64,000 nucleotides of DNA from Macrostomum lignano. Taxonomy: Eukaryota. A program made the position numbers and the translations under genes. The DNA lies in assembly GCA_002269645.1 (NCBI GenBank), contig NIVC01000353.1, forward strand, positions 593,877-657,876, read 5' to 3'. Below are positions 4,599 to 62,166 of this stretch, one piece after another. Positions within the stretch are counted from its first letter, which is position 1, and the number at the start of each line of letters is the position of its first letter. Below the pieces are notes generated by a model. It was given only the letters and a program-made list of their open reading frames with translations, ran no database searches and was not told where the DNA came from.

Positions 4599-5125
4599 AT
4601 GTCACGCGCATCCCGCAGGGCGACGCCAACCGCTAGACGAGGTCGTCAACAAACGGCTCTATTGCAAAAATTTTGCTGCTGCTGCTGTTGCACCGGCGCC
4701 GCCAAGGATGACGTCATAGACAAAGACCTAACGAGACACGACGACGAAGACTCGGACGACGAAGCTCCAGCGGATTCAAGGTCGCCAGCCAGGCTGCTGC
4801 CGCGCAAGTTTCGGGCTGCCAGCGCCGACAACTTGGAGCTTCGCCCGTTGAGATCCGAGAAGTCGGTGACATTCGTGACGGCTTCAACCGCACCTGGCGA
4901 CAGCAGCTCCGACAGCAGCTCCAAACGGAGGCGAGTTCTGATCGCCTTCAAGACCGTGTGCGACAAGACAACGAGCACGTCGGCTGTTAGTCCCGGCGGT
5001 TCCAGCGCCGACCATGCGGGACAGAGGGCGCCGAGTCCTGCTAGGGAAGGAGGCGGCGGCGCCAAGGTTGCGCCCGCGGGATCGCATGGACCAACCGGAG
5101 GTGGAAGGGTGAGACTCATTGAAGG
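4599..5125 (+). CDS. Candidate alternative first coding exon of the PDE4 gene (N-terminus with a six-Cys run)
   Basis: ATG at 4599 with G at -3, GC-rich 176-codon ORF. Donors AGG|GTGAGA at 5109 (phase 0) and AGG|GTGAGA at 5126 (phase 2, fits exon 62002). Linkage to PDE4 is inferred from phase. Confidence 0.6.
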
Positions 5126-5190
5126 GTGAGACTCATTAAAGGGTGAGGCTCATTGATAGGTGAGGGATTTCGATTGAGACGCGAATCAGC

Positions 5191-8100
5191 TAGAGATGAC
5201 AGGTGAGACATCTGATAGAGATGACAGGTAAGAGATCTGATAGAGATTAAGATTACAGGTGAGAGATCTGATAGAGATTAGGATTAGAGGTGAGAGATCT
5301 GATAGAGACGTCAGGTGAGAGATCTGATAGAGATGTCAGGTGAGAGATTTGATAGAGATTAAGATTACAGGTGAGAGATCTAATAGAGATGTCAGGTGAG
5401 AGATTTGATAGAGATGTCAGGTGAGAGATCTGATAGAGATTAGGATTAGAGGTGAGAGATCTGATAGAGACGTCAGGTGAGAGATCTGAAAGAGATTAGG
5501 ATTAGAGGTGAGAGATCTGATAGAGACGTCAGGTGAGAGATCTGATAGAGACGTCAGGTGAGAGATCTGATAGAGACGTCAGGTGAGAGATCTGATAGAG
5601 ATGTCAGGTGAGAGATCTGATAGAGATGTCAGGTGAGAGATCTAATAGAGATGTCAGGTGAGAGATTTGATAGAGATGTCAGGTGAGAGATTTGATAGAG
5701 ATTAAGATTACAGGTGAGAGATCTAATAGAGATGTCAGGTGAGAGATCTGATAGAGATGTCAGGTGAGAGATTTGATAGAGATGTCAGGTGAGAGATCTG
5801 ATAGAGATGTCAGGTGAGAGATTTGATAGAGATGTCAGGTGAGAGATCTGATAGAGATGTCAGGTGAGAGATCTGATAGAGATGTCAGGTGAGAGATTTG
5901 ATAGAGATGTCAGGTGAGAGATCTGATAGAGATGTCAGGTGAGAGATCTGATAGAGATGTCAGGTGAGAGATCTGATAGAGATGTCAGGTGAGAGATTTG
6001 ATAGAGATGTCAGGTGAGAGATCTGATAGAGATGTCAGGTGAGAGATTTGATAGAGATTAAGATTACAGGTGAGAGATCTAATAGAGATGTCAGGTGAGA
6101 GATTTGATAGAGATGTCAGGTGAGAGATTTGATAGAGATGTCAGGTGAGAGATCTGATAGAGATGTCAGGTGAGAGATCTGATAGAGATGTCAGGTGAGA
6201 GATTTGATAGAGATGTCAGGTGAGAGATCTGATAGAGATGTCAGGTGAGAGATCTGATAGAGATGTCAGGTGAGAGATCTGATAGAGATGTCAGGTGAGA
6301 GATTTAATAGAGATTAAGATTACAGGTGAGAGATCTAATAGAGATGTCAGGTGAGAGATCTGATAGAGACGTCAGGTGAGAGATCTGATAGAGATTAAGA
6401 TTACAGGTGAGAGATCTAATAGAGATGTCAGGTGAGAGATCTGATAGAGATGTCAGGTGAGAGATCTGATAGAGATGTCAGGTGAGAGATCTGATAGAGA
6501 TGTCAGGTGAGAGATCTGATAGAGACGTCAGGTGAGAGATTTGATAGAGATGTCAGGTGAGAGATTTGATAGAGACGTCAGGTGAGAGATCTAATAGAGA
6601 TGTCAGGTGAGAGATTTGATATAGATTAAGATTACAGGTGAGAGATCTAATAGAGATGTCAGGTGAGAGATCTGATAGAGATGTCAGGTGAGAGATCTGA
6701 TAGAGATGTCAGGTGAGAGATCTAATAGAGATGTCAGGTGAGAGATCTGATAGAGATGTCAGGTGAGAGATCTGAAAGAGATGTCAGGTGAGAGATTTGA
6801 TAGAGATTAAGATTACAGGTGAGAGATCTGATAGAGATGTCAGGTGAGAGATCTGATAGAGATGTCAGGTGAGAGATTTGATAGAGATGTCAGGTGAGAG
6901 ACCTGATAGAGATGTCAGGTGAGAGATTTGATAGAGATTAAGATTACAGGTGAGAGATCTGATAGAGACGTCAGGTGAGAGACCTGATAGAGATGTCAGG
7001 TGAGAGATTTGATAGAGATTAAGATTACAGGTGAGAGATCTGATAGAGATTAGGATTAGAGGTGAGAGATCTGATAGAGACGTCAGGTGAGAGACCTGAT
7101 AGAGATGTCAGGTGAGAGATTTGATAGAGATGTCAGGTGAGAGATCTGATAGAGATGTCAGGTGAGAGATTTGATAGAGATTAAGATTACAGGTGAGAGA
7201 TCTAATAGAGATGTCAGGTGAGAGATCTGATAGAGATGTCAGGTGAGAGATTTGATAGAGATTAAGATTACAGGTGAGAGATCTAATAGAGATGTCAGGT
7301 GAGAGATTTGATAGAGATTAGGATTAGAGGTGAGAGATCTGATAGAGACGTCAGGTGAGAGACCTGATAGAGATGTCAGGTGAGAGATTTGATAGAGATT
7401 AAGATTACAGGTGAGAGATCTAATAGAGATGTCAGGTGAGAGATTTGATAGAGATTAGGATTAGAGGTGAGAGATCTGATAGAGACGTCAGGTGAGAGAC
7501 CTGATAGAGATGTCAGGTGAGAGATTTGATAGAGATTAAAATTACAGGTGAGAGATCTGATAGAGATTAGGATTAGAGGTGAGAGATTTGATAGAGACGT
7601 CAGGTGAGAGATTTGATAGAGATGTCAGGTGAGAGATCTGATAGAGATGTCAGGTGAGAGATTTGATAGAGATTAGGATTAGAGGTGAGAGATCTGATAG
7701 AGACGTCAGGTGAGAGATTTGATAGAGATTAGGATTAGAGGTGAGAGATTTGATAGAGACGTCAGGTGAGAGATTTGATAGAGACGTCAGGTGAGAGATT
7801 TGATAGAGACGTCAGGTGAGAGACCTGATAGAGATGTCAGGTGAGAGATCTAATAGAGATGTCAGGTGAGAGATCTGATAGAGATGTCAGGTGAGAGATC
7901 TGATAGAGATGTCAGGTGAGAGATTTGATAGAGATTAAGATTACAGGTGAGAGATCTAATAGAGATGTCAGGTGAGAGATCTAATAGAGATGTCAGGTGA
8001 GAGATCTAATAGAGATGTCAGGTGAGAGATCTGATAGAGATGTCAGGTGAGAGATCTAATAGAGATGTCAGGTGAGAGATCTGATAGAGATGTCAGGTGA

Positions 8101-60518: not shown

Positions 60519-60704
60519 ATGAGTCTAACGCCGCTACTGGAGGATTCAAAATCGTCAGATCCGTCCATCGATCCAGCGTCAGTCAGGGAATGGACTGAAA
60601 CCGAGGAGCTGCCACCAGAAGAGCTGGTGCACTATGAGACGTCCGTGATACCGACCGCCGGCGGGGACATCACGGTGACAAAGAAAACTACTCGAAGGCG
60701 TCGA
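60519..60704 (+). CDS. Coding-like ORF or exon (MSLTPLLEDS...KKTTRRRR), relationship to PDE4 unclear
   Basis: ATG at 60519 and protein-like composition. The best donor CGA|GTAAGG at 60705 is phase 0 and does not fit exon 62002 directly. Confidence 0.3.
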
Positions 60705-62001
60705 GTAAGGATAGTAAAAAATGTACAACAGTCAATGGTGCCACTATCGAGCGTCGTAAATCGAACGCTGTGCTCACGTCTAGTACGCTGAAAGTGACGA
60801 GGACTCGACAGTTGCTGGGGTTAGTTGGCTGATGTCGTGTATAGCGCTATAGCCTAAATGAGGTGGTGAGATAGTACAGTGTTAAGTGTGCTGTAATGAG
60901 CTTTACCCTATGGTTACTGGTGGCTCATACTGTCTCAAAACTACTTTCTAAGCATGGCACAGTTACCATTCCTCACATAACTGGGTTTCTGATAGCTGCG
61001 AAAGCAACTTTTGCCAGCATTTTCACAACTCAAACTTTCAAGGTTCCGGGTCGATTTTTTTCAAAGCTGCCCCTTTCTGCATATTATTAAACTTTTTTAT
61101 TTTCCTAATACTTGGCAGGCCCTAGAAAATTTGATTAAACTTGCAAAACATCACGCTTTTTTGACTGCTTGACAAAGAAGTTCCAGAATCTTCGTTTGTA
61201 AGAATATTTGCAACAAGGAAAATTCTTAGCCAAGTTCCACAAGCCAATATTGAAACGGAATTAGCCTGAGTGAGCTCAGCTTCTCTTCTATTCCTCAATT
61301 TGCATCAATCAATCAGACGGGAAACCCGCACTCGTGGAGAAAAAGTTTTCTTTGAGAATCCTGCCGTTGCCTGAATTATGCCGGGGTTTTATATCGCGAG
61401 CACTTCAAGCGCGAGAAATTGTTTCTCTAGAGGAGGAGGGCATTTTCCCATGTTGGTATGGGAGCTCTAAAGTCTTAGGGATCCATCGAGGTTTGACGAC
61501 TTAAGCCCCATCGATTTCCCCCCCCCCTACTCCTTCTCAGTGCCTGATCGATTATTCACGGAAGCTGCTCAGCCGGGCACTGCTTCTGTACTCTGCTGCA
61601 TTACTTTGCATCATTATTTGCCGATAAGAAAGCGGTATATAGATGGGGTAGTAGTGATAGATCAGGGCTGAGGCTTAAGAGGACGAAAGGAGGAAAGAAA
61701 GTTACAGAATCTTCCCATCGACTGTTCTTCAGGCGTTAGCTGGAAACCAAATACAGGCACATAAACCATCTTTGAAAGGTCACGTGAAAACTAAGTTGAG
61801 GCACTAATATTTTTTACTACATATATAATAAACTTGCTAACTTTAATATTTAGCTGCGAGGCAGAATTGCCTCGGTGATTGTGGTGACACGATATCGCCG
61901 AGAGGCGTTGCTCATACTCGTTCTGTTTGTGACAATAAACTGTTTCTACCAGCCGCGACAAACGCTTCTCCACACACCCACAATGCTCTCCAATCATGCA
62001 G

Positions 62002-62166
62002 CTTCGACGAGAACGCTGCCCACCGAGGCGAGGGCCATCCTGCTAGCGGCGGCCTGTGCTCCACCACCTGCCTCACCAGAGGCCGCGAGTCTTTTCTCTA
62101 CCGCTCCGACTCGGATTTTGACGTTTCGCCGAAGACGTCGCGTCACTCCTCTCTAGCCAGCGATTT
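62002..62166 (+). CDS. PDE4: PDE4/dunce cAMP phosphodiesterase, first shared (UCR1) coding exon, phase 2 to phase 2
   Basis: Acceptor catgcAG at 62000-62001 and donor GTAAGT at 62167. Translation from 62003 is FDENAAHRGEGHPASGGLCSTTCLTRGRESFLYRSDSDFDVSPKTSRHSSLASD. This matches from memory the PDE4 UCR1 signature FDV(E/D)NG...QRRESFLYRSDSD(Y/F)(D/E)xSPKxMSRNSSxAS. The frame is not in the ORF track because it has no start codon. Confidence 0.93.

Follow-up and report, generated by a model that had tools for sequence, protein, structure and literature searches.

The DNA described here raises the question of how a single PDE4 exon, lying behind a long region rich in tandem repeats, is supplied with its start codons. 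The DNA is a stretch of 64,000 nucleotides from Macrostomum lignano (GenBank assembly GCA_002269645.1, contig NIVC01000353.1, positions 593,877 to 657,876 of the forward strand), which we call the window and in which positions are counted from its first letter. We believe it likely that the window contains the 5' part of a PDE4 gene of the dunce type, in which alternative start exons, scattered across some 57 kb, splice to one common exon. An initial annotation had proposed that alternative first exons feed this PDE4 exon, and the proposal has indirect support of four independent kinds, which draws on the identity of the exon and the phase of its acceptor, on the statistics of the open reading frames (ORFs) and their donors, on a codon signature and on a motif in two of the candidates, E3 and E4.

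The common PDE4 exon and five candidate first exons

The exon to which the candidates would be joined is the following (here and below, a slash in a splice site or junction marks the exon boundary).

62002..62166, + strand: common PDE4 exon; acceptor atgcag/C in phase 2, donor GATTT/GTAAGT in phase 2

It opens with a single C, the third base of a split codon, followed by TTC GAC GAG AAC (FDEN), and its translation after the leading C is FDENAAHRGEGHPASGGLCSTTCLTRGRESFLYRSDSDFDVSPKTSRHSSLASD. The product, FDENAAH...TRGRESFLYRSDSDFDVSPKTSRHSSLASD, corresponds to the linker and the start of UCR1, including the position of the PKA site. Against the PDB, the exon matched PDE4B (4wzi/4x0f, a long-form crystal construct) with E=2.3e-5 over RE(S/A)FLYRSDSD(F/Y)D(V/L)SPK. 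Of 1.84 billion representatives scanned exhaustively with phmmer, 107 proteins had E<=1e-3, and every one of them carries the same exon. The PDB match and these 107 homologues bear out the earlier assignment of the joined exon to UCR1 of PDE4. Full-length PDE4s with UCR1 and the catalytic domain are among the matches (P0036, P0037 and P0077), and the majority are short ORFs called on genomic contigs, reading through the acceptor. The best identity of library proteins to the exon is 67-83%. ESFLY(R/K)SDS is found in 106 of the 107 sequences counted, and the window exon shows the pattern of a UCR1-start exon in a PDE4/dunce gene, ...RESFLYRSDSD(F/Y)(D/E)xSPK...SSxxS.

A phase-2 intron directly 5' of FD(V)(E/D)N, the point at which unique N-termini are joined, is also present in the window (cag/C TTC GAC). 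Because Ser, the residue given by genomic read-through of ag/C, precedes FD(V/A)EN in 62 library proteins, the position and phase of this acceptor are taken as shown to be conserved across animals. In spliced models, the residue before FD is C, G, R, S, P, I or others, as expected of NN/C codons. The PKA site of UCR1, RRESF, reads RGRESF in the window (62074-62091, AGA GGC CGC GAG TCT), unlike the 106 of 106 retrieved homologous exons in which RR precedes ESF. This is divergence, and does not exclude the exon from the PDE4 family. Judged by its sequence, we regard 62002-62166 as a genuine PDE4 exon.

Five ORFs on the same strand begin with ATG and end in donors that would join this exon in frame.

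4599..5125, + strand: E1, candidate first coding exon; 175 codons plus 2 nt, donor AGG/GTGAGA, join G-FDEN
26066..26316, + strand: E2, candidate first coding exon; 83 codons plus 2 nt, donor TGG/GTGAGA, join G-FDEN
32183..32382, + strand: E3, candidate first coding exon; 66 codons plus 2 nt, donor GTG/GTGAGA, join C-FDEN
39119..39444, + strand: E4, candidate first coding exon; 108 codons plus 2 nt, donor CTG/GTAGGA, join C-FDEN
57952..58136, + strand: E5, candidate first coding exon; 61 codons plus 2 nt, donor CAG/GTAGGT, join S-FDEN

The ORFs at 4599, 26066, 32183, 39119 and 57952 end in phase-2 donors with G at -1 and +5, all as the initial annotation had described them, and its joins of G, G, C, C and S to a common exon made of one C followed by FDEN were reproduced exactly. 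The length of each exon is 2 mod 3, and the predicted spliced translations read ...G/G/C/C/S-FDENAAH...RESFLYRSDSDFDVSPK. An in-frame stop lies 9-63 nt 5' of the ATG in every one of the five, and therefore they would be translation-start exons and would not continue an upstream frame. The C-terminal ends are ...SRRHTLAMSC for E3 and ...LNRRRHSCNTC for E4, and the E5 peptide contains RKRSIS. The strongest donor is that of E5 (CAG/GTAGGT, 6.1 bits). The donor region of E1 consists of three 17-bp tandem copies, at 5108 in phase 0, at 5125 in phase 2 and at 5142 in phase 1, and only the second is in frame with 62002. From -3 to +6, the first two copies have the same sequence (AGG/GTGAGA), and the choice of donor for E1 is ambiguous.

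Chance, codon usage and N-terminal motifs

When all ATG ORFs of at least 40 aa were considered, ends of the form NNG plus stop with G at -1 and +5 were found in 5/66 on the + strand and 0/46 on the minus strand, and E1-E5 are the complete + strand set. The base rate of such donor-like ends is 1.7% (5/299 short ORFs, both strands), in agreement with the 1-2% per ORF estimated beforehand. On the + strand, 5/24 ORFs of at least 60 aa ending outside tandem arrays have donor-like ends (binomial P = 4e-5), compared to 0/25 long ORFs on the minus strand. In 300 second-order Markov simulations, the count never reached five (mean 0.14). The ORF/donor pattern is non-random. Because the selection rule itself (NNG plus stop) enforces phase 2, the shared phase of E1-E5 is not independent evidence.

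Two weaker candidates, placed by the initial annotation at 13951 and near 19164, both fit an in-frame two-exon route, but the second had to be corrected to an exon at 19163-19329.

13951..14154, + strand: X1, candidate first coding exon; 68 codons (MENSDSV...GLSQK), donor AAA/GTGAGC in phase 0
19163..19329, + strand: X2, candidate internal exon; 167 nt, acceptor aatcag/CAG, donor GAA/GTGAGC, phase 0 in and phase 2 out

X1 is out of frame with 62002 directly, but in frame with X2, which encodes QDFLAPPGSQERRHSD...SSR and joins the common exon as N-FDEN. Together, X1, X2 and the common exon form a single open frame, ...ERRHSD...SSRN-FDEN. The pyrimidine tract at the X2 acceptor is poor, and X2 could alternatively be a short first exon starting from ACCATGG at 19286. 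There are probably more first exons than the five that would feed the common one directly, and the arrangement is probably more complicated.

In a leave-one-out codon test, seven of the eight exons (E1-E5, X1, X2 and the common exon) served to train log-odds of in-frame versus off-frame codons, with stops ignored, and the eighth was scored in six frames. The proposed frame ranked first of six in 8/8 exons, and that of the PDE4 exon ranked first also with a codon table trained on the candidates alone. Control ORFs outside the arrays ranked first at the chance rate, 7/32 for those starting with ATG and 29/192 for those running from stop to stop (8/8 exons against 7/32 controls, Fisher P = 8e-5). 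One first-ranked control is real coding sequence, a reverse-transcriptase ORF.

E3 and E4 carry the motif RRH(S/T)-x3-4-C/FD of PDE4 N-terminal exons in other animals, and the broader form RR(H/F/Y)(S/T)-x3-5-/FD is present in E4 and E3 and absent from E1, E2 and E5. Joined to the common exon, E4 can be aligned with P0075 through the junction with no gaps (HSYLNRRRHSCNTC/FD versus NSVYPRRRHSWICG/FD), and E3 aligns with the UCR1-containing P0083 (RRHTLAMS-C/FD versus RRYTLAYTPS/FD). We take the RRH(S/T)...C/FD of E3 and E4 to be the RRHS(W)IC/FDV motif of PDE4D3. In both exons, RRH[ST] is placed 4-5 residues before the donor. It occurs five times in the 128,000 six-frame residues of the window, always on the + strand, with three of the occurrences in E3, E4 and X2. 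As a window-wide statistic RRH[ST] is unenriched (5 seen vs 3.9 expected) and was rejected; it is informative solely by its position beside donors. Ser13 in the RRHS of PDE4D3 is a PKA site (PMC7770493).

Two more ATG ORFs on the + strand lie between E5 and the common exon. That at 60519-60704 has 62 codons (MSLTPLLEDSK...KKTTRRRR) and a phase-0 donor CGA/GTAAGG, which is out of frame with 62002, and it resembles coding sequence in the codon test (rank 1). It may be a further start exon requiring an unseen small exon, or may be due to chance. That at 58409-58488 encodes 27 aa and has a good phase-2 donor, AAG/GTAAGC, which would give the join S-FDEN; short ORFs like this one occur at chance level (2/144).

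Other searches for relatives of the unique exons were negative. The five spliced products, concatenated and compared with an index of 5.8 billion proteins, gave no match among 8000 candidates, which were probably of low complexity, and a cleaned concatenate (E1, X1+X2, E3, E4, E5 and the ORF at 60519) gave no match at E<=10 among the maximum of 8000 candidates. With E2 plus the common exon, a single foreign genomic ORF was matched, via the common exon only. Pfam returned nothing above threshold on all candidate peptides, and Rfam gave 0 matches. The only long foreign contig with the common exon (L001, 9 kb) showed no conservation 5' of the exon and gives no test of E5. A match of E3 to the N-terminus of P0037 (E=5e-4, 81-sequence database) was dismissed as driven by polyglutamine and out of register with the junction. 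An all-against-all comparison of the candidate exons revealed no convincing paralogy, E3 and E4 being weakly alike through polyglutamine and RRH(S/T).

The proposed arrangement and its rivals

What we infer from the sequence about splicing, promoter use, first-exon status, the function of the isoforms and the exact donor of E1 would combine as follows. The + strand of the window would hold the 5' part of an animal PDE4 gene, mostly one very long 5' intron region filled with minisatellites, with alternative translation-start exons that presumably each have their own promoter and would be spliced mutually exclusively. The direct route to the common exon at 62002 would be taken by E2, E3, E4 and E5, plus E1 if it uses its second donor. 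For X1, and perhaps for E1 from the phase-0 donor at 5108, the route would lead first to X2 (19163-19329), which would turn phase 0 into phase 2 and then continue to 62002. The products would be long-form PDE4 isoforms with UCR1, UCR2 and the catalytic domain, encoded downstream of the window, in common. What sets them apart would be their N-terminal peptides, serving in targeting or regulation, and in several of these a basic RRxS/T motif resembling a kinase site stands just before the junction.

Several observations weigh against this arrangement. In addition to having RGRESF for RRESF, the common exon diverges unusually far in its first half (FDENAAHRGEGHPASGGLCSTTCLT). In a six-frame motif search, none of the remaining UCR1 (TPFAQVLASLR), UCR2 or the PDEase_I catalytic domain was found in the window; they would lie downstream of 64000. 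The donors of E2 and E4 have mediocre scores (2.9 and 2.5 bits, respectively), and the core of the in-frame E1 donor recurs in the out-of-frame copy 17 nt 5' of it, with 191 more donor-like cores after it. The protein library searches, one of them limited to 8000 candidates, detected no homologues of E1, E2, E5 and X1, and an exact look-up of the E1 ORF gave no record. Missing similarity of these four exons would be expected, because N-termini evolve fast and the libraries hold no close relative. The codon table was built on only ~640 codons. If any frame open from an ATG to any decent GT is counted, phase 2 has a modest lead, with 5 ORFs versus 3 and 2.

We consider it very improbable that the ORFs arose by chance as open frames in unique islands of higher GC content, their terminal stop codons mimicking GT[AG]AG donors. 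It is true that any ORF ending in NNG+T[AG][AG] resembles a phase-2 donor, that the window has many further GC-rich islands and that the phase-2 excess is small once termination is not required. However, chance fits poorly with 5/24 donor-like ends at a base rate of 1.7%, with none on the minus strand and no simulation of the 300 reaching five, and it leaves the codon signature (8/8 vs 7/32 controls) and the PDE4 N-terminal motif in E3 and E4 without explanation. It is also unlikely, in our opinion, that E1 (176 aa) above all, or E2, E5 or X1, are real coding exons belonging to other transcription units, nested inside the PDE4 intron or located 5' of it, or splice elsewhere than to 62002. These four lack PDE4-specific similarity, E1 is 57 kb off with a phase-ambiguous donor, and dunce introns reportedly contain nested genes (Qiu et al. 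1991, cited in PMC4379497). Neither a Pfam domain nor downstream partner exons were detected, however, and all candidates lie on the PDE4 strand with the codon signature of the PDE4 exon, while the junction residues G, C and S occur in PDE4 models of other species. The distance of E1 is in itself unremarkable, because the annotated model of P0075 spans 190 kb for 114 aa.

A narrower alternative concerns E1 alone. It is possible, although we doubt it, that E1 splices via its first donor (5108, phase 0) to X2 (19163), like X1, so that X2 would be common to the two most distal promoters. E1 could take this route because its donor copy at 5108 is also in phase 0; that copy matches 5125 from -3 to +6, by arithmetic the frame is maintained from 5108 through 19163 and on to 62002, and X2 shows the coding signature in the required frame. 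On the other side, the pyrimidine tract of the X2 acceptor is poor and the route from 5125 is in frame just as well. Alternative start exons that splice to a common PDE4 exon remain the explanation that we favour for the window as a whole.

Intron, possible promoters and other PDE4 genes

TATAWAW was found within 300 nt 5' of 4/6 ATG exons, with a background of 0.76 per kb, and TATA-like boxes lie 64-87 nt 5' of the ATG for E1, E2 and E5.

4535: TATATAA, 64 nt before the E1 ATG
25981: TATAAAT, upstream of E2
57865: TATATAT, upstream of E5

These boxes may be taken as weak hints of promoters. A bacterial promoter/terminator scan was set aside as irrelevant here.

About 53% of the window (1-64000) consists of tandem arrays, comprising some 29 minisatellites with units of 11-43 bp and long (AGAT)n/(ATCT)n tracts that occur in both orientations, the one at 45136-49136 being 4 kb long. 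The unique sequence between the arrays forms islands of ~1 kb. At four of eight donors (39444, 14154, 26316 and 5125), arrays start 12, 15, 23 and 66 nt 3' of the donor, respectively; the chance of an array start within 66 nt of a random unique position is 0.061, which gives a binomial P = 8e-4 for 4/8 donors with a threshold set after seeing the data. At 5109-10218, the E1 donor lies within the 17-bp triplicate GGTGAGACTCATTGAAG, which merges into a 25-bp satellite of ~190 copies, each with CAG/GTGAGA. Sense-strand AGGTRAG cores number 191 in this 5-kb array after E1, at 5191-10218, and 0 in the other arrays; on the minus strand, 3 were counted over the full window. One might suppose that the minisatellites are not neutral filler, that arrays nucleate at and grow from the 5' splice sites of first exons and that the E1 array is a platform of decoy donors or of binding sites for the U1 small nuclear ribonucleoprotein (snRNP), tuning productive splicing or elongation, but we give this idea very little credence.

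The intron also contains a large ORF on the opposite strand.

49379..51394, minus strand: ORF of 671 aa; reverse transcriptase domain (RVT_1, E=1e-9) and, weakly, a GIY-YIG nuclease domain

This ORF is a Penelope-like retroelement inserted antisense in the intron.

The unique N-termini of PDE4 isoforms come from alternative transcription start sites, and each mammalian long isoform has its own promoter and a unique N-terminal exon joined to a common FD(V)(D/E)N exon that leads into UCR1 (PMC2929239, PMC7460819). The layout proposed for the window is like that of mammalian PDE4D and the PDE4A/B long isoforms (PDE4D3, D4, D5, D7, D8, D9, D11). It resembles PDE4D in that a split codon with third-base C gives Cys, Gly, Ser or Arg before FD, and PDE4D3 in that the junction is preceded, at a distance of a few residues, by an RRHS kinase-site motif. 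It differs from mammalian PDE4 in that orthology of the N-terminal peptides does not extend past the short motif, and in that the common exon begins with FDEN, without Val or Gly, diverges in its first half and has RGRESF for RRESF.

Among invertebrate PDE4 genes, Drosophila melanogaster dunce (dnc) starts at multiple sites, and its N-terminal exons are joined at FDVENGQGARSP; several different N-termini precede FDVENGQGARSP in the library (P0046, P0050, P0051, P0059 and P0065). The gene extends ~167 kb (PMC4379497). Unlike dunce, the window has introns of which ~53% are minisatellite or microsatellite arrays, and its unique exons are without detectable similarity. In P0075 (NCBI GCA_964442445.1), the first exon ends in RRRHSWICG and splices over ~190 kb to FDVENGAAH..., and the identity to E4 plus the common exon is 50% across the junction. 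P0075 differs in that it comes from another species, and only the last ~14 residues of its first exon are alike.

The multi-promoter layout of PDE4/dunce, with its N-terminal exons, has been known for decades and the window is an ordinary example of it; therefore the understanding of the family is unchanged. What the window provides is a usable exon map of the 5' end of PDE4 in an apparently unannotated, divergent animal genome, in which the common exon is accompanied by six or seven candidates for start exons and by one small exon that would convert the phase. In addition, the window shows that the PDE4D3-type junction motif RRH(S/T)...C/FD reaches far outside vertebrates.

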